Assembly: GCF_037042905.1 (NCBI RefSeq)
Contig: NC_087246.1
Location: 15,376,001 to 15,440,000 of the forward strand
DNA from: Lytechinus pictus
Taxonomy: Eukaryota
DNA: 64,000 bases
Reading direction: 5' to 3'
Position numbers and translations under genes: made by a program. Under the pieces are notes generated by a model. That model searched no databases. It saw only the letters and a list, made by a program, of their open reading frames with translations, and was not told the origin of the DNA. Positions within the stretch are counted from its first letter, which is position 1; the number at the start of each line of letters is the position of its first letter. This document shows positions 46,169-60,400 of the stretch, piece after piece.

Positions 46169-49100
46169 TCACACAATCTGAATTTGGCCATTGTCCAGCT
46201 GATTGTTCATACTCTCTAACTCCTCCAGCCCTTTGGTCTGGCTCTTGGTCTTGTGCGAGACCAACCTCCGGTAAAAATGGAATGCGAAGAGGACGAGAAT
46301 GACCAGGACAGGAGCTGTGATGACGGTGGCTGCGATAGCTGCACTGTCATACTGAGCCATGCCAAACTTGACCCATGCAAGCAGGATAATCTCCACAAGG
46401 AAGAGGAAGATGCCCAAGACTGTGGAAAAGATCCATGACATTTCTATGTAGAAAGCAAGGCTGTTGTGTGGGGATTCCTGGACTGCGTTCACATTGTGCA
46501 CATTACTGACTGCTTCAATGTTCGGAAGTATGCAGGTACTGATGAGAAGCGCTGCCATGTGAACAACTACCAGGATCGTTGTGTTAATACTAAATGCTAT
46601 CATGAGGGGGTCATAAGCATTGTTCTGTTTATTCTCTGATAACTGTACTTCCACCATGGCAACCTGAAAAATGATAAAATTCCATTTAAAAATTGTCTTT
46701 TGCTTGTACTACTAGGCCATCCCTACAACTCAGCCTAAACGATTAGAAATCTAACTACATGTAAAAGAAAAGCTTTTAAACCTGGGAAATCCAACCCAAA
46801 TAAAAAGTTGTTTCTAGAGGAAAGAGAAAAATCATACAAGAAGATAGGTGAAAATTTGAAGTTTTATCAGACCAACAATAAGGAAGTCATGAATTTTTAA
46901 TGTTGGAAATACCCATGGGGACTTCAAATTGGCCTCATTTGTGATGTCATAGTGATACAAAGCAAGAGCTACTCTTCCATTTACTCCAATGGCTAAAATA
47001 TGAATTATTTTTCAAAAGTTTTTTTACCCCTTTAAATATATATTTTCTTTCAATGAATCCACTGTTAAAAAACGGTGGATAAAATGGCGTATTTAACCAT
47101 GGCAATAGGTGTCAATTTTGTGCACTGTGACAAAAGCCCATAAAATAATTACAATAATGATTATTTATAATCAAGTTTTAAATTTTATTATTTGTTAAAT
47201 AATTTTTATCTTGGGTCTATAGATTGTTCTTCAAATTGGCATTTTGTAACATTGCTTTTCGAAGCTACGTAGGGGAGACCGGGGTTAGTTGGAACGCGGG
47301 GTAAGTTGAAACTTGAAACATAGTAATTTTCTTTAACGTCTTTAAATAAATTTCTGCAATACTGCCCTCAATTTATTGTCATTATCAACAGCCATCCACC
47401 ATATTACAGGCAACACATGTGCAACAAGCCTGGTGAAGTTAGAAAGGAAGTTGTTTTTTTGACCTTCTGAGTAATTTTTTTCTCTTTCAGAAATGTTTTA
47501 TTATCTCAGAGAAGTTTACAGATCAAGTTGGCCAGTTTGGGGGTATAAAAGACACTTGTACCAAGCTACAAAATGAGGTTATTAATATGCCATGGTGAAG
47601 TCCCTTTTTGTGCTGTAAGCTTATAAACGTCAAATGGGCCTCTGGGGTTAGTTGGAACAAAATTGAAGGGGCTAGTTGGAACATGTTCCAACTTGCCCCA
47701 AACATAATTATGAATAAAAAAACATTGGATATGAGAAAAAAATATATAAGTATTTCACACTCTTCTGAACGTGTATTGTATACCATGCTTGTTTTGTTTA
47801 TCAGTTAGGTCTGAGTGTGCATTTAAGGCTTATTGTAGCCTTGTAGGCCCCTAATGCAATATTAACCCTCATCAAACTGGGGGGGTCAATTTGAGCCCCC
47901 CCCCCCTCGAGAAATTTCGTCACTACGCCGTCGCGCAAATTTTTTTGACTACACTGCTCGCTGACTTTTTTCTTTCAAGTCTTGCGCATCATTTGAGACC
48001 AAATTTGCGATTCCTGGGTGCGCGGTTTTGAAATTGCGCAACATTTTGTACGTGCATGTCGGACCCAATATTGCTCAAAAACGTTATTCCATGTACAAGG
48101 TCAATGCAAATGTATGATTATTTTTTACTTTTGTTGGTTCAAATAGATTTATTTTATGCTATTTATGATCGCAAAAGAGTCCCGACAAAGTTCATCGGAA
48201 AAAAACCAAGGCTCGAAAAAACAAAGAAATACAAATAAAAAAAACAAATACATAAGAAATTATATTTTTTGCAATTTTTGGTGGATATTTGTTATAAATG
48301 TGAAAATTGATACTCTCACCAAAAATTAGAATTCTACTAGCTTAATAACTAGAGTTAAAGGCAAAAACATTTAAAAAAAAAAAAAATTTAGGGCAAATTT
48401 CATATGCTTATTTGCATAATTAATTAATGAAAAAAAATATAAACAATTAAGTTTTGTCTTGTAAATTTGACGCAGAAGTACATGAAATTGCTGATAGTAC
48501 ACTTAATAGCGTTTAAAATCAAACGCATCCAAATATGCGGAAATCTACTACACAGTCTGCTTGCATGAGTGGCTGTATAATAGAAAACAAAGTTCAACAA
48601 ATCCACACTTTAAATATTTTGAACTTGAAAAAAATAAAGCAAATAGGCTAAAATCATGTAATATTACAATTTTAAGTATTTTTAGTATAATTCTTAATTG
48701 ACCATGCAGTGTTCCAACTTACCCCATACCATGTTCCAACTTATCCCGTTTTGGGGTAAGTTGCGATATTTGCGATGGTCTTGTTCAAGGTGGATTTTTT
48801 TTCAGTAACCATAATAGAGTTAAAATTTTATGGGGTACATTTGAAGCCCTTAGATACGGTATATGCTTCAAGCTGATATATTGTTTTCCTAATAAAATCT
48901 ATTTGGATTTTACAGCCATTTTTGTCAAAAATGTTCCAACTAACCCCGGTCTCCCCTACATGCACGTCATAACGAAGTGGTTCAAGCCTATGTGCGGCAC
49001 GTATACGAATGGATCAAGGGATCTACACAAGATTGGTCTGGTAAGAAACCTCTCATGTTGAACCATTTTGTTAAGATATTTTTGCACCTTCATACGCATT

Positions 49101-52100: not shown

Positions 52101-53621
52101 GAATTTTGGAGTTATATTCGCTTAAATTTCATTTTACCCTATAATAATATGAATATATTTTAGAAATTGAGGCACAGGAAATACTATTTTTTGCATGATA
52201 AATCGAGTGCGTAGCCTTAGGACCCCTTCTACATCGGGTGGCGAAATCAAGAGGTGTTCGGAAAACACGGCGGGATTTTCGTATTAGTGAGTTTTGCGAT
52301 ATTTTCTTTTTGGTTAATGATCTTTAGAATGTTTGCTACAAATTAGTGAAAGACATTTGTTGAAATATTAAAATTGGGATAGTTCTTATTGTTTGAAAAC
52401 AAAGTGCGTAGCTTTAGGTCCCCCCTAACCCAGGTGGCAGTTTCCTGACATCTGGGCACAAACTGGAACCTCAAAAAAACGAAAAGTTCTCTCCTTCTAC
52501 CCCAGTCTCGATCGGCCATTTTGTTACAATTCATAACAAAAATGGCCGATCGAGACGGGGGTAGAAGGAGAGAACTTTTCGTCTTTTGTGGTTCCAGTCT
52601 GTGCCCAGATGTCAGGAAACTGCCACTCGTTAGACCTTCATCCATATAATCCGTGGTAAGTGCATAATTTCTGTTTTCACAATTCATTTGGAGAAATATT
52701 TAGACCATAAATCACCCTAGTCCCGTGAGTATGGTAAAATACACGGTAAGCTCCTGGGCTCCGGCCCGCACAGCGGGCCGGAGCTCCCTGGGTTAGGTCC
52801 CCCAGGCATCTAACCCAGAGAGCTCCCGCCCGCGCAGCGGGCGGGAGCCCAGAAGCTTACCGTGTATTTTACCATTGTCACCGGACTAGGGTGATTTATG
52901 GTCTAAATATTTCTCCAAATGAATTGTGAAAACAGAAAGTATACAATTACCACGATTATATGGATGAAGGTCTAACGAGTGGTAGATTCCTGACATCTGG
53001 AACTTCAAAAAAACGAAAAGTTCTCTCCTTCTACCCCGTCTCGATCGGCCATTTTTGTTAAAAATCGTAACAAAATGGCCGATCGAGACTGGGTAGGAGA
53101 GAACTTTTCGTTTTTTTGAGGTTCCAGACTGTGCCCAGATGTCAGGAATCTGCCACTCGTTAGACCTTCATCCATATAATCGTGGTAATTGTATACTTTC
53201 CGTTTTCACAATTCATTTGGAGAAATATTTAGACCATAAATCACCCTAGTCCGGTGACAATGGTAAAATACACGGTAAGCTTCTGGGCTCCCGCCCGCTG
53301 CGCGGGCGGGAGCTCTCTGGGTTACCAGGCATCATACGTACGTACGTAAATAATTTTTTTTTTTTCGTTGTCAAAAATGTCCGGTTTGGGGCTTCGTGAA
53401 ATAAAAAATAGGCACCATTTCAAAAAAGACAAAAGAAACAAACAAAAACAAAAATACATTTCATCTGTTTCATGGCTTTGGATTTCGAGGGAGAGGAATG
53501 AAGATAATACCATGGCGAAACCTGCCAGCAGCGCAGACGTTCTGCTGGAAGCCTTCAGCTTGGCTCGACTCAGGTAGAGCTTGCGCCAGTTGAGCGCCTG
53601 GGCGGAGTGCTGGTTCGACAT
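46169..53621 (-). CDS. ORAI: ORAI calcium release-activated calcium channel subunit, 2 coding exons (53621-53511, 46663-46169), 201 aa from the first AUG
   Basis: [30 protein letters not shown]|VAMVEVQL contains the selectivity-filter Glu; four TM segments; FLVEII in TM3; C-terminal LEELESM helix. The true start may lie further upstream (see findings). Confidence 0.95.
47268..48960. mobile_element. Non-autonomous TIR element (Tc1/pogo-like) carrying a truncated piggyBac-like insert from about 47866
   Basis: 27-bp TIR GTAGGGGAGACCGGGGTTAGTTGGAAC; internal TTAA|CCCT start with no matching right end. Confidence 0.75.
49317..49713. mobile_element. Kolobok-like MITE
   Basis: TTAA on both flanks; TIR AG..AAATGCCAGT. 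Confidence 0.75.
52426..52795. mobile_element. Foldback MITE copy A (left arm internally deleted), AcademH-like
   Basis: TAACCCAG...CTGGGTTA; flanks GGTCCCCCC / GGTCCCCCA. Confidence 0.75.
52811..53324. mobile_element. Foldback MITE copy B (complete), AcademH-like
   Basis: Almost fully palindromic 514 bp with TA...TA termini and a perfect 9-bp TSD CCAGGCATC (52802-52810, 53325-53333). Confidence 0.85.
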
Positions 53622-53992
53622 CTCCTTCACGTAGGATTGATAAATCCAATCCGAGTAACTAGCGTCTTGCGTTTGGGGCTGAATTTTGACTGATTTACTT
53701 CACGTCTCCCGATTAGAATCTGTTGTTCAAACAACCACACTGATCATAGAACGCCTCCTGTCAAGTTGACCTCTGATCGTCGAAGAATTTACATGCGATT
53801 CAACATTATTAACGATGATTTCTGGGTGATCTCAGGATAACACATGCACACAGTCACACCGCAGCGATACATGTTTATGCTAGCCTCGTTTCAAAATTCA
53901 ATTAATTTTATCTTGATAAGATCAGATCTAGGAGCGATGAAAGGAATCTGGGACCCCACCATTACCAAGAAAGCTCCCTTTTCCCCTTCAAT

Positions 53993-54249
53993 CACTGGCG
54001 GATCCAGGGGGGGGCACAGCGGGCACGTGCCCCCCCCCCCCCCTTTGAGAAGAAAAATTAAAATTTGTAATGTAAAAATGCCATTAAAACAGAGGTGTGC
54101 CCCCTCTAATTTTGAAATTGAAGACCTTTTTTTTTGTCAATTTTTTTTCGGGTACGAAATATCCTTAATTTGTGGTTGAAGTTTTTTGTTTTTTTCCGTG
54201 TCAAAATTTGCCCCCCCCCCCTTTTTGGAAAATCCTGGATCTGCCCCTG
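53993..54249. mobile_element. hAT MITE upstream of ORAI
   Basis: TIR similar to CAGTGGCGGATCCAGG; perfect 8-bp TSD CCTTCAAT. Confidence 0.85.
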
Positions 54250-56707
54250 CCTTCAATCTCCCACCAGCTATACTACATACGGTGTACAATCTTATAAATC
54301 ATCAATCCATAGAAGTGTCAATATTCAATCACATTCTCATCTTCTCTCCCACTAAAAGTTACAGCTAACGTTACTCTCCCAGCTTTTCTCTCTCTCCTTT
54401 TTTTCTTTCTCTCTCTCTGTCACACTTACTTTTCTTCTTCTATTCTTCAGTTTTCCTCAATCACAATCAACATTACATTGATTTAAAAAGAAAAATAAAA
54501 CACGACGGTTTATTTGTGGGGTGTGACACAAAACAGATTTGATTGTGTGAAGGGGGGGGGGGCACTCAACCCAAATGGTGCCCAAGAAGTGTTTTATATT
54601 ACATTTTAAGGTTAATCAAATTACCATCTTATTGTTCAGCCACCACCAACACCCCCCCCCCCCGGCCTTTTCCCTCAATCATTTGCACAGCACAGTATGC
54701 CTACAGTCCATTCTGCACTATATTCTAAAACTACATTTACCCTTTTTTGTATTACTGTAGGAGTTGTTAAGTAGTTCTGGCGGGGCCTGTTTCACAAAGG
54801 TTTTGATTATGGTAACTACCATGGTAACACTAACAAGACTCAGCAGCCAATCAAAGTCAAAGTTTCCATGATAATTACCAAAACAATTAATCTCTATAAA
54901 ATGGCCAGGCTCCTGTTGTGGATAGTTGACTAAAAATGTCAATGTCATCATGCAATGATATCAGACAACATTGCCCCCCCCAACAAAAAAAAAATGGTGA
55001 GCATTTCAATAATAATTAATGACATGACACAAAACAGGATAAACTGTAGGTTTCAGCTTTAAAATTTGTTTAATACATGTCATTGAAAAAAATAAAGCAC
55101 ATATCTTCAATGGGTATATATCAATCATGTAATTAGAAATAAAATCATATTCAGCTCATGATGACACTAATAAACTTGTCTTCTGATAAACACAGACAAG
55201 GAATTTTGCTAAAAATCTGAGCCATGTTTTAAAGCAGGGATTCTGCTACAGATCATAGCTAAATTCCATCATGTTTTATCAGAGAGTAAAACATGAGGAT
55301 TAGTCATGAAATGTGACACGTGGGATTCCTGCATGGGAGTTTAGACAAATTCTTTTATTTAGTTATATGTGCCCATGCAAGTCTAAATATTTGTATTTGT
55401 ATATCAGGAGTCTCAATACTAAATATCATTATCATTAGCAAATCACGCTAAATCAGTCATTCATATTGAACTTAATATAATAAATGAATAAAGAAATAGA
55501 CAGAAAAATATTTTCCACCACTGGCAGTCCTAACTCATATGCATATCAAGCAATCTTTACAGTGGAAACTGCAACATTAAAAAAAACATTTGATTGGGAC
55601 TTTAAACTTGTCTTTATTGTTGTATATCAGTTAAGTTACAATTAACCACTACAGGTCATGAAGAATTGGAATTCCCTTTATAATAACTGCAGGCTGCAGT
55701 ATAAAGAGAAATTGAAGGGAAAAAGGGGGACTATTTCATAAAACTTGTTATAAAAGCAAATTCGAATGAACAATTTATATCTACTGAAATCATTCAATTT
55801 GATTGGCTGATAGTAGAGTTGTTATAGAAATTGTACATTTGTTATTATAATAAGTCGAAATGGGACCCATGTCTGTATTTTTTATACTATAGAGAATGTC
55901 TTTCTGGTGAATGGCTGAAATAGCCTGAATAAAAACCAATCTTTTGTTAGCCAGGTGGGCTGATATTTCCTGATGTAATTCTCTTTTTTTCTCTCTCTCT
56001 CAGTCTGGATATAACTTTATTTTATTAAATTAAACATCATGACTCCACTGAAATTTTTGTTGGCATGCTTTTCATGGTTATCCTGCTTACTATGTAGCAT
56101 GACCTAATAATATATCATTCATGATCACTATATAGCGCATATTCAACCATCACGATAAGATATCAATCTATCAATCAAAATATAATGAGTTGAACCAAAA
56201 TTATTAAAATTTAATCAAACTGGGATTTAAAAAATATGTTAAACGTATTCTGTCATTCATAAATTACTGATAAAGAATGGAAGGTGAAGATCAATAGTGA
56301 TTAATCAATTCGAATTAAGTTCAATACCTTACAAGTCTGGGCCCTACTACAGTCATTTAGGCACATATATTTACCTTCATCAGAGGAACATAATCTGCAC
56401 ACACAGGTCAACATATTGCAATCCCTCTAAAAAGGTGGATATAGAGCCAGTTCCTGATTGCAGGTCCTTGAAAGGGGGAGTCACCTTCCCATGAAAATAC
56501 GAGTTTGAATTGTGCTCAGGATTTGTGCTTTCCTGGACATAATCATGAAGATCACGTTGGTTATTTATAATATAGTCTTCTAATAAAAAGAAAAGTGGTT
56601 CTTGTCACTTTTTTCTTTATTATTATTATTTGTAAATTTTTATGATTTTATTTGATTTGAAAAAAAATAGCAGATATAATTGAACCAAAAAAAAATATTT
56701 CAAACTA

Positions 56708-57451
56708 CAGTCCGACCTCTCTTATCCGGCCTCCCCTTATCCGGATCTCTCTATTATCCGGACGCACTCTTGCCGAGATTTTTTTTTTTCAATCCAATCT
56801 ATCATGTGAGGAAATGAGATTTCAATCTAAACTCAATCCTATGCGCAAACTCTCTTTGATTACATATATTTTCCAATATAGTCTACCTACAACAACAATA
56901 TTTTTAATGAAAAATTCTTCCCCAAATCACCGAAAGGACTTAGACAGTAAATCAGGGCACATCGCAAATATTTCAGCACGTTTTCTTTTTGTTTCCCGGG
57001 AAAATCAACGCATGTCTCGCTAGCTAACGTTAGGCCTCAATACGGACAGCGCCATCTATCATGTTTGAGCCTACAGTCAGTATAACAATGGCCGACATTG
57101 CGAAGCTGCGATACCCGCTGCGATGATCTAATTGTAAAACTTAGTTTTCATTGAGTCTCTCTCTTTCGTGGTATGCTCGATGTATACCTCAATCATTTTA
57201 GCAGGTAAATTATCCAACAGTTTTGGCCATCGACCGATATAATTTCCGTAAAAAATACCGCCTATAATTTGCACTGACACTGCAGTGAATACTGTCTGTA
57301 TGCCCAATACAATAGATAACATGTAGCTACCGCCGTTGGGCCGGGGAGGCAGTAGCTTCGTGTATTTAATATTGGGTCTCCCAGATCCGGATAAATCCCT
57401 TATCCGGATTGGTGCTGGTCCCAACGTGTCCGGATAAGAGAGGTCGGACTG
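56708..57451. mobile_element. pogo/Tigger-like non-autonomous element just 3' of the RNF25 stop
   Basis: Perfect 22-bp TIR CAGTCCGACCTCTCTTATCCGG with TA TSD. Confidence 0.9.
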
Positions 57452-57469
57452 TATATTAAGAAGTCAATG

Positions 57470-60400
57470 TTACGTAAATTCAAACCCAGGTGGGGGCTTG
57501 CACTTTTGAACATTGACCACAGGCTGTTGGTCGAATCCAGGAGGTGGCCGGACACTGCGTTCCTCTTCTTTCTTGCTTGCGCTTCCTGCCTTCAAACCAG
57601 CTTCCTCTACTCTCCTTTGGTAACCGTCAAGTTCCTTCCGTACTCCACCTGACCCTGCTCTATCAGCACCCCTCCCCATGTCTTGTGCAGAACCACCCCT
57701 CCGTGCCCCTCCCCTTGCACTACCATGGCCTCTCCCTGTTCTCCCTCCCCTCTCCTTATATCCAGACCTTGGATCCTCACCCTGTCTTTCAACAGAATCC
57801 TCTCTTAGGGAGCCTCCATCTGAATGATCAGATCTGGCAGGCCTCCTACGATTTTGACCATGATCAGATCTATGACCATCTTTCCTATGATCATAATTTC
57901 TATGATGGTAATTATTTCTGTGTTCCCTGTTTCTTATTGCTTTCATGTCATTGCCACTTTGGTTTTCTTTCCTTTGAGTATCCTTCCCTGTACTTGTCCT
58001 TTCTTGTTCAATCTCAACATCCTTTAATTTCTTTGTTTCTGCTTCTGATGATACCTTTGTTTCTCCTTCCTCCCCAGCTACATCTCTCTTCTTAAGTAAG
58101 TCTTTCTCATCAACACCCTCAAGATGGCCCTCCATAGTCTCTTTGGATTCAGAGGCTGATGGTGCCTGTCCTCCACTGTTTCTCTTCTCAAACTTGCTCC
58201 TCAGTTGATCACCAATCTCCTCTTCCTTCTGTTTTATGACTTTGTCACTATCTTCTTTTGATTCATTTGACTGTTTTACCTTGGATGTCCACCTCTCCCC
58301 TCTCCTTTCACCTTCTTTCTGTCCATTATTCCCTCTTCTTTCCACTTGTCTATCTCTATCACCAGTCCTTCTTTGATCAGATTTCTGATGACCTCTACTT
58401 GATCCTGGCCTCTCATCCCTCCCGGAATGTCGCGGTCCTCTCGGATGTGACCTATGATGACCCCTTCCCTCACCAAGACCTCTTGAGCCCTGGTGATGAC
58501 TGTCATGTCCTCCTCGTCGACTATGATGTTTGTTATGGACAAAAACAGGTTTTCCATCTCTGGGCTTTGTCTCAGGGTGTGATGCAGCAGACTTGGAGTT
58601 GTCTTGGGATGTCTTTGCAACAATTGCAGCTGTTGCAGAAGGTGATGAACTCCTGAGTTGCTGGGAAACCATATCATCTATTGACACATTAGGAACCTAA
58701 ACACAAGGTTGTGAACCAAAGAAAATATCATTTAACAACTACATCAACATTTCCTGTAAATCAAGTGTAACTGATTATCTTAAAGACCATGGTTAACGAA
58801 AAAGGTCTTATCTTTAAAAAATCTGAACTTTGATGTGTGTTGTATTTAATATACACCCAAGGAGGAAATGGAAATCAAATTCATGCAGATATTTTCAAGA
58901 TATCTGTGACTGAATCATTTAATTTATCAGACAATTTGTCACACTATGCCTTAAAACTAAAGAAAATATTGACCTCGGTCATGTGACCTGAAACTCACAT
59001 AGGATGTTCAGGGATATTTAATTGCTCTTATGTCTAATTTTCATAAACTAGATCCATAAAAATGTAAAGTTACGATGACAGTTCCACAAGTACCCCCAAC
59101 ATGGCCAAAGTTCGTTGACCCTTAGTGACCTTTGACCTTGGTCATGTGACCTCAAATCGGGCAGAATCTTCAGTGATACACTACTACCCTTCCATCAAAG
59201 TTTCAAGAACTAGGTTCATATACTTTCTAAGTTATGACAACATTTCAAAAATTAACCTTGGTTGAGATTTCGATACTGATTCCCCCAACATGGTCTAAGT
59301 TCATTGACAATACATGACCTTTGACATTGGTCATGTGACCAGAAACTCAGGCTTTCTAAGTTATGATGACATTTCAAAAACTTAACCTTGGTTAAGATTT
59401 CAATGTTGATGACGCCCCCACCGTCGTCGGAAAAGCAACGCCTATAGTCTCGCTCTGCTATGCAGGCAAGACAAAAATATTGGTGAATGTTTGAGGAAAA
59501 TCCATTAAAGATTAAGAAAGTTATAAGGATTTTAAGTTTGGGATTTATGATGTCATAAACGAGCAGCTGCCCCATATGTTATGTTAAATAAAATGCAAAA
59601 ATTGAACTTTTTAGTGGTCCGTGATGACTTATTTTTAATTTTCTTTCTAGGAGCAGGTGTGAAATGATTTGTGTATTGATATACTGAAGGAACAATAAAA
59701 ACCATTTTCAATCTTCTGATAAAATGACAATTGATTGATTTGTTACCAAAAGATATGTAGGAGAGCAGCTCGCACATGACATCACAAATCAAATAATTAA
59801 AATTCTAAAAAAATTCATAATCTTTAATGGATTTCCTCGAACCTTTGCCAATATTTTCTCCTTTTTTTCTGCTATTTTGACAAATTAATTTTTTTGTCAG
59901 GGTGATCTTACCCTTTAAAACAACTCTAAAAAAATTAAAACTGCAATGAAGCAGTAACATACTCTTTACATTGTGTAGCATTGGTTACACAAAAGGAGGG
60001 TTGAACCCCTAAATACAATTCTAAAATAAATTGTTGGTATTATGCCCATTATCCTGATTGGGAATAATCCTACATATAAATCACATACAAAAAAAGAAAC
60101 AGGGAGGGCATTGAAATCTGGACATTTATTTGAATATAATGACTCTGAATTTCCGATAGTACCATAAAATATACAATGTTCCTGGCATATTGACAAGGTA
60201 AATGTTAAATCGTATCACTAATAATACAGAAACTGTCATTGGGCACTTGGAACTTACATGTCTAATGCTGATAAGATGTTTATTGCTTTCTGCCTCTATA
60301 TCAATTTGGCCTCCCTTTGCTTTCTGGCGATCGAACCCGACTTTCATCTCCTCTTGCCACTGGCGCAACTCTGGTGTCATTTCAATATCAGGACAATCAT

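Follow-up and report, generated by a model that had tools for sequence, protein, structure and literature searches.

Introduction

Human ORAI1 occurs as an alpha and a beta form. ORAI1-beta begins at Met64 or Met71, and the first AUG of the gene stands in a weak Kozak context (PMC9735889). Residues 52-60 of the human protein make up a predicted caveolin-binding site, implicated in the internalisation of Orai1 at meiosis, and residues 39-59 an AKAP79-association region (PMC9735889). Conserved protein extensions that begin at AUU are also known, from TEAD1, fly WDR26 and a PTEN proteoform (PMC3105428, PMC4892431), as is an AUU-initiated upstream open reading frame (uORF) in AZIN1 (antizyme inhibitor) that has A at -3 and C at +4 (PMC3105428). 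Here we analyse the ORAI gene of the sea urchin Lytechinus pictus, which lies within a 64,000-nucleotide (nt) stretch of contig NC_087246.1 (assembly GCF_037042905.1, positions 15,376,001 to 15,440,000; ‘the window’, to which all coordinates below refer). The gene probably gives rise to an AUU-initiated long form of 222 amino acids (aa) beside an AUG-initiated short form of 201 aa.

The arrangement proposed here resembles human ORAI1 alpha/beta in that one mRNA would carry two in-frame starts, the first of them weak and passed over in leaky scanning. Human Met64 is the homologue of the second start in our alignment A1, and the part specific to the long form holds the sequence [YS]-x-D-W-I-x-Q-S-Y, which occupies residues 52-60 in the human protein and so falls within or next to residues 39-59. 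The two systems differ in their upstream start, which is a weak-Kozak AUG in mammals whereas the sea urchin candidate is an AUU. The alpha-specific part of mammals is also longer, comprising 63 residues with poly-Arg/Pro, AC8-binding and phosphorylation sites, whereas the sea urchin extension has 21 residues and shares the conserved motif only.

The ORAI AUU fits a known class. As in the conserved non-AUG extensions described in PMC3105428, coding conservation extends in frame, the frame lacks an AUG after its upstream stop, and the conserved region begins at a near-cognate codon that is itself conserved and has A at -3; the L. pictus context, AAAAUUC, shares both A at -3 and C at +4 with the AZIN1 uORF. 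Unlike those extensions, the present one belongs to an ion-channel gene of invertebrate deuterostomes. What is unusual about it is the depth of conservation, which spans echinoderms, hemichordates and cephalochordates and sets it apart from the cases in PMC3105428, together with a near-cognate codon that is orthologous to the AUG of another superphylum. The mollusc and annelid ORAIs that begin MQ...SYxEW are orthologous, with the same distance between start and motif and with Gln as second residue, but their start is ATG where invertebrate deuterostomes have ATT. ORAI is not mentioned in PMC3105428, and a full-text search of the literature returned no report of a non-AUG or near-cognate ORAI start, the matches concerning STIM2 and TRPV6.

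An open ORAI frame upstream of the annotated start

The L. pictus ORAI gene is encoded on the minus strand in two coding exons. Exon 1 alone matches Pfam family PF07856 (E=3.1e-10, 40.4 bits against a cut-off of 25) as well as the Drosophila Orai crystal chains 4HKR and 6BBF (E~2e-9). The full 201-aa protein (P0151), which NCBI names ‘protein orai-2-like [Lytechinus pictus]’, carries the same family domain. The NCBI model begins MSNQHS at an ATG located at 53619..53621 (context aaggagATGt). The rest of coding exon 1 (53511..53618, SNQHS...AGFAM) encodes the N-terminal helix and the start of the first transmembrane segment (TM1); the Pfam and structure matches fall here, and the exon ends at a gt donor at 53510-53509 (GCCATG, then gtatta after 53511), where the transcript contigs described below also break (53509/53511). 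Exon 2 (46663-46172; 164 codons, VAMVEVQ...QIQIV) follows an acceptor reading tttttcag before GTT and is closed by the stop codon tga at 46171-46169, so that the whole feature covers 46169..46663; the corresponding part of the NCBI model is 100% identical to the genomic exon. The selectivity-filter Glu region is present, formed by the end of exon 1 (...ALLAGFAM) and the start of exon 2 (VAMVEVQL), and the N-terminal helix/TM1 columns (x-G-F-A-M-V-A-M-V-E) are invariant across A1, a MAFFT alignment. A six-frame search of the whole L. pictus assembly found a single ORAI locus. No paralogue therefore supplies an AUG-started long form, and this candidate explanation was rejected.

Read on the minus strand, the segment 53702-53511 starts TGA AGT AAA TCA GTC AAA ATT CAG CCC CAA ACG CAA GAC GCT and continues up to and into the annotated start as AGT TAC TCG GAT TGG ATT TAT CAA TCC TAC GTG AAG GAG ATG TCG. 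The TGA (53700..53702), which is also present in transcript contigs, closes the ORAI frame upstream, and no ATG occurs in this frame between it and the annotated ATG (53621-53619). Since this stop is in frame, any AUG further upstream in the same exon is blocked from the ORAI frame. The in-frame near-cognate codons of L. pictus are ATT at 53684, ACG at 53672, ATT at 53645, GTG at 53630 and AAG at 53627. The first of these, at 53682..53684 in the context gtcAAAATTc with A at -3, is the proposed start. Codons 2-21 of the extension then occupy 53622..53681, with the motif YSDWIYQSY at 53631..53657, and with the 164 codons of exon 2 the protein measures 222 aa from the ATT and 201 aa from the ATG.

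Homology of the extension to other ORAI N-termini

We searched 1.8 billion representative proteins with phmmer using the 63-aa exon-1 peptide as the query. Among the 298 matches, many ORAI proteins begin to align at query residues 7-14, which is 13-20 residues before the methionine. In alignment A1, YSDWIYQSY is placed on mammalian ORAI1 YPDWIGQSY (residues 52-60) and the sea urchin methionine on that of SEVM, human Met64. Judged from these alignments, the homology 5' of the annotated ATG is genuine and not a chance resemblance. An earlier note on this DNA, made from its letters, had read an ORAI-like frame without an AUG 5' of MSNQH as far as the TGA at 53702-53700, likened the upstream stretch to ORAI1 YPDWIGQSY, set the AUG opposite Met64, picked out the ATT at 53684-53682 and its context along with the ACG at 53672, and derived lengths of 222 and 201 aa. 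Translation of 53511-53702, the length of exon 2 and alignment A1 bear out each of these points, and its account of human ORAI1-beta starting from Met64/71 agrees with PMC9735889. Exon 1 alone, used as the query of a word-index search, retrieved chiefly fragments from vertebrates and molluscs and added no echinoderm leader, and no ORAI protein from S. purpuratus turned up in either protein search.

The annotated ORAIs of molluscs and annelids, and many genomic open reading frames (ORFs), open a few residues ahead of the motif, usually with Met-Gln, as seen from MQNSYSEW in Owenia, MQNRAESYQEW in Biomphalaria, MQQPETNSYEAW in Solemya and MQGASENSYQEW in Sinanodonta, and further ORAI starts of the same type read MQSPQTTHSYQEW and MQDSSSYSEW. 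At the homologous position the Biomphalaria DNA reads taa..aaccagATGCAA (taa aac act tct aac cag ATG CAA AAC). The isoleucine codon of the deuterostomes falls on this protostome start: in A1, the Ile of the seven included deuterostome sequences stands in column 1, as does the protostome initiator Met, and the residue after the start column is Gln in both groups. The NCBI ORAI models of Diadema, Acanthaster, Asterias, Patiria, Apostichopus, Glandiceps, Ptychodera and Branchiostoma all begin at the downstream Met, so that none of these eight invertebrate-deuterostome models includes an upstream AUG exon.

The nemertean Tubulanus polymorphus, annotated with a short form, has an ORAI without an SYxxW extension 5' of its start. 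The N-terminal motif has thus been lost in at least one protostome lineage, and this species is uninformative on the start codon.

An ATT codon conserved in nine invertebrate deuterostome genomes

The leader was compared across nine genomes (L. pictus, Diadema, GCA_013332995.1, Acanthaster, Patiria, Asterias, Apostichopus, Glandiceps and Branchiostoma), which cover sea urchins, sea stars, one sea cucumber, one acorn worm and amphioxus. The ATT is present with A at -3 in all nine, the preceding codon being AAA, AAG or ACC, and the base at +4 is C in eight of them and G in amphioxus. The codons around it are GTC AAA ATT CAG CCC in L. pictus, followed by the extension and the ATG, and GGC AAA ATT CAG CCC at both Diadema loci, where the extension ends ...SYSDWVYQSYVRE-ATG. 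The echinoderm-like GCA_013332995.1 has GCC AAA ATT CAC TCG (...SYSDWIYRAYINE-ATG). Among the sea stars, Acanthaster and Patiria share GCC AAG ATT CAG CCC, and Asterias has GCC AAA ATT CAG TCA, with the same ending in all three (...SYSDWVYRSYVTE-ATG). Apostichopus reads ATC AAG ATT CAA CCT (...SYSEWIYGSYVQR-ATG), the acorn worm Glandiceps TCC AAA ATT CAG TCG and 29 more codons (...SYSEWVYRNYVSE-ATG), and Branchiostoma floridae GTC ACC ATT GAG CCG (...SYADWLRESYAKV-ATG).

In each of the nine genomes an in-frame stop lies 5-56 codons 5' of the ATT (five in L. pictus), and no ATG is found from that stop to the conserved region. The stretch from ATT to ATG is open for 17, 18, 20, 21 or 38 codons and ends SY[SA][DE]W...Y...-ATG, and every insertion or deletion (indel) within it is of whole codons. 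The edge of similarity lies just 5' of the ATT. The one shared element there is the AAR codon next to the ATT, which would encode Lys and for which amphioxus has ACC; the residues before that codon are unrelated, namely SKSV, ELSG, SQPA, QQPA, HQVA, TQTS and LTVT.

These comparisons bear directly on which codon would be used. Initiation might occur not, or not only, at the ATT but at another near-cognate codon that varies with lineage. ACG is usually a better start than AUU, and there are codons that could serve, such as the ACG at 53672 in L. pictus, an AAG at -1 in the sea stars and an ATC two codons upstream of the ATT in Apostichopus. None of these, however, is conserved, and Diadema has GCG in place of the L. 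pictus ACG. The ATT is the sole near-cognate codon common to all nine genomes, and it alone stands at the edge of conservation and at the position of the protostome ATG. We therefore regard a different, lineage-varying start as unlikely.

Two of the genomes deserve separate comment. Diadema antillarum has two contigs that encode the same 207-aa ORAI over gene spans of 14.2 kb and 2.4 kb, reflecting intron lengths, and whose leaders differ at one codon (GAC vs GTC); the pair represent haplotigs that differ by a large intronic indel or, alternatively, a recent duplication. For GCA_013332995.1, the database protein P0001 reads an in-frame TGA as Trp owing to the TGA=Trp code of the gene caller, and it was through this code that the ORF-style protein exposed the leader of the ORAI exon.

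Coding-type conservation of the extension

Codons were compared over a 13-codon core before the ATG in seven genomes, with Asterias and Apostichopus read separately. Variable sites fall at codon positions 1/2/3 in the numbers 7/7/11, and the pairwise codon differences comprise 87 synonymous and 93 nonsynonymous changes. The core S-Y-S-[DE]-W-x-Y..Y is kept in all seven genomes, and Asterias and Apostichopus add to this set. The first Ser of the core is encoded by AGT or AGC in most species and by TCA in Glandiceps, a switch between the AGY and TCA families, while the Trp is invariant and the Tyr and Asp codons swap between synonymous forms. Outside the core, the second codon of the extension has changed synonymously from CAG to CAA in Apostichopus. 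For contrast, 37 codons of the channel core hold 387 synonymous vs 103 nonsynonymous differences. By these counts the extension appears to be under weaker constraint than the channel core, as is expected of a short linear motif in a tail. The codon patterns nevertheless indicate that it is conserved as coding sequence over the divergence of echinoderms, hemichordates and cephalochordates, since non-coding sequence would not hold an open frame, whole-codon indels and synonymous changes together.

The same patterns argue against the extension being untranslated, whether as the relic of a coding N-terminus or as a conserved regulatory element of the RNA or DNA leader, with the 201-aa protein as the only product. 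In favour of that explanation, all public gene models use the AUG, the AUU is a weak start with uORFs before it, and Tubulanus indicates that an ORAI can manage without the extension. A relic would not, however, keep its frame open, confine its indels to whole codons and change synonymously at third positions over such a divergence, nor would Ser be kept across two codon families beside an invariant Trp. Equally, folding of the sequence from eight species found no conserved RNA structure. An untranslated leader is in our estimate somewhat less likely again than the use of a different near-cognate codon.

Continuity of the L. pictus mRNA

Transcript contigs and stranded reads of L. pictus, the one species for which RNA was used, were aligned to 53300-58700. 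Two contigs from separate studies match the genome with 0 differences and 0 gaps, X1 (2705 nt) over 53509-53833 and X15 (1894 nt) over 53509-53846. Both leave the genome exactly at the exon-1 donor, which identifies them as spliced RNA, and both cross the ATT, a candidate acceptor at 53678 and the TGA unbroken. The extension thus lies on mature mRNA, contiguous with the AUG and without an intron from 53511 to 53833/53846, and the 5' leader of exon 1 extends at least over 53685..53846. Raw stranded depth (X19, X20) is 2.2-2.9 across 53662-53842 and falls to ~0.2-0.5 across 53843-54023, and the reads of these two sets cover 53481-53842 solely in the orientation also seen for RNF25, a minus-strand gene. 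No read variant is listed within 53500-53850. Given this and the exact match of the contigs, the ATT is real.

These data also address whether an unseen upstream exon supplies an AUG and is spliced to an ATTCAG acceptor at 53678, in which case the conserved AAAATTCAG would mark an acceptor site. An AG does follow the ATT in seven of the nine species, always in phase 0; raw depth is 2-5 times lower upstream of ~53662 than downstream; and loose ends of low support are only partly listed. Yet two independent spliced contigs run through 53678, and no joint is listed there among the contigs and stranded reads over 53300-58700. The 1.2 kb upstream have no minus-strand coverage save repeats: above the ORAI leader there are only high-copy repeats (54024-54385) and then nothing until ~55066, where contigs of the RNF25 3' untranslated region (UTR) begin, and the L. 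pictus RNA shows no ORAI exon being expressed in the space between the leader and that UTR. The AG itself is missing from GCA_013332995.1 (ATT CAC) and from Apostichopus (ATT CAA). The earlier note had remarked on the lack of a pyrimidine tract at this acceptor, and indeed pyrimidines make up 35% of the 20 nt before ATTCAG in L. pictus vs 60% at the exon-2 acceptor of the gene; across species the share is 0.35-0.55 before the candidate AG vs 0.60-0.80 at true exon-2 acceptors. No such exon appears in the NCBI models of eight species, and the alignment of ATT with the protostome ATG, and of the next Gln with the protostome Gln, is a further point against it. We rejected the upstream exon because the RNA is continuous, because two species lack the AG and because purines prevail ahead of it, and consider it very unlikely, marginally more so than an untranslated leader.

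The earlier note had also allowed for an error of assembly or a private change from ATG. This explanation of the ATT has a negligible chance of being correct and was rejected, because contigs from two other studies match 53509-53846 without a difference, no read variant is listed there and eight other genomes have the ATT as well. The note had named three findings that could tell against AUU initiation, namely splicing at 53678, an ATG in reads or relatives, and a lack of codon-level conservation. In the event X1 and X15 are collinear through 53678 with no joint and the AG is absent in two species, the ATT recurs in nine genomes with no read variant listed in L. pictus, and the S-Y-S-[DE]-W-x-Y..Y core changes synonymously, including the AGY/TCA switch of its Ser. 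This supports the reading of the ATT as a start.

A model for two ORAI proteoforms

We propose that scanning 43S complexes reach the AUU, which stands within AAA-AUU-C and so has A at -3, and that a minority of them would initiate there (53684-53682) with Met-tRNAi. The resulting long form of 222 aa would begin Met-Gln, as in protostome ORAIs, and its first 21 residues would carry the conserved SYSDW-Y-SY motif. Most ribosomes would bypass the AUU and go 63 nt further to the AUG at 53621 (GAG-AUG-U), yielding the 201-aa form. Both proteins would be made from the one unspliced first exon of the ORAI mRNA, with leaky scanning as the likely source of the two. By analogy with the segment specific to ORAI1-alpha, the extension may act in membrane trafficking or partner binding, and the SYSDW-Y-SY motif may govern residence in the membrane or the binding of partners.

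A number of points weigh against this model. The decoding of the AUU as a start is something that we infer rather than observe directly. Non-AUG start codons are weak by nature, and AUU ranks with the weaker of the near-cognate set. If the leader begins at 53846 or above, it contains four upstream AUGs in two short uORFs, by which scanning ribosomes would be intercepted. The first uORF (53789..53845) has three ATGs (53845, 53806 and 53794) that share the +1 frame relative to ORAI, and a stop at 53791-53789; the contexts of its AUGs are weak to moderate, and it is present only on transcripts that start at or above 53846. The second (53727..53747; ATG ATC AGT GTG GTT GTT TGA) is in the ORAI frame and ends at its own TGA, with the TGA at 53702 closing that frame a second time. 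When the segment +4..+63 was folded in eight species, no stable hairpin was found 3' of the ATT (z -1.3 to +0.6 vs shuffles). The ACG at 53672 in L. pictus and the ATC in Apostichopus mean that the exact start could vary by lineage. Lastly, RNA depth is 2-9 reads with 138 low-support loose ends unlisted, so that a minor isoform spliced at 53678 is possible, and continuity of the mRNA comes from L. pictus as a single species. The uORFs, the absent hairpin and the weakness of the AUU bear on how much of the long form would be made and not on the coherence of the model.

Two further mechanisms were considered and rejected. Read-through from the in-frame uORF at 53747 would need to pass two TGA codons, and this uORF is without conservation. 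A downstream hairpin that boosts the near-cognate start was discarded on the folding scores given above.

The motif that separates human ORAI1-alpha from ORAI1-beta is ancient, and a non-AUG start is the only way to reach it in sea urchins, sea stars, sea cucumbers, acorn worms and amphioxus. All current gene models in these animals consequently miss a probable long isoform, and for at least nine species a test for coding conservation would put RefSeq-style models right. The locus also offers a natural experiment in translation, with ATG in protostomes vs an ATT fixed across deep divergences of invertebrate deuterostomes, a pattern which argues for selection of the weak start over mere tolerance of it. 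Calcium signalling has classically been studied in the eggs of echinoderms, and a link has been drawn between the homologous motif and the internalisation of Orai1 in meiosis.

More tentatively, and with the balance of our judgement tilted slightly the other way, the two-proteoform design of ORAI, in which a long form carries the motif of the caveolin/AKAP region and a short form starts from the Met64 equivalent, may predate mammals. On such a scenario the initiator ATG would have become a deliberately leaky ATT in the deuterostome ancestor and then been held fixed through the divergence of echinoderms, hemichordates and amphioxus, and the vertebrate ORAI1/2/3 genes would later have regained AUG starts further upstream from former leader sequence. 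Few known AUU start codons would then match this one in depth of conservation, and translation could tune the ratio of long to short ORAI as a parameter of store-operated calcium entry, as in eggs undergoing meiosis or fertilisation.

Genomic neighbourhood

Directly upstream of ORAI and on the same (minus) strand is RNF25, whose last-exon ORF spans 58687-57470 and ends PPPGFEFT*. Contigs and stranded reads suggest that it has a long 3' UTR (55066-57452), reaching down to ~55066-55218, about 1.2 kb from the start of the ORAI transcript. A 746-bp stretch of this UTR (56706-57451) looks like a high-copy repeat whose insertion is polymorphic. It is skipped by one X15 contig, in which 56705 is joined to 57452, its ends are not GT..AG on either strand, and there are many loose read ends at both borders with high depth on both strands.

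Between RNF25 and ORAI lie high-copy repeats at 54024-54385 and 55653-56014, over which contig depth runs from hundreds to more than 2000. They have reads on both strands and many internal joints, and the first contains long runs of G and of C. Within ORAI itself, intron 1 holds a large near-perfect inverted repeat (52800-53350) with arms of ~250 bp and its centre near 53075. It resembles a foldback element or one similar to a miniature inverted-repeat transposable element (MITE), and a related copy apparently lies at ~52343-52687.

In sea stars, an acorn worm, amphioxus and a snail, the region upstream of ORAI holds a gene resembling KDM2 (JmjC, zf-CXXC, PHD, F-box, LRR) on the opposite strand, and the Patiria model of KDM2 extends across ORAI. 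The L. pictus window likewise contains KDM2, but the immediate upstream neighbour is RNF25. The linkage of KDM2 and ORAI looks old.

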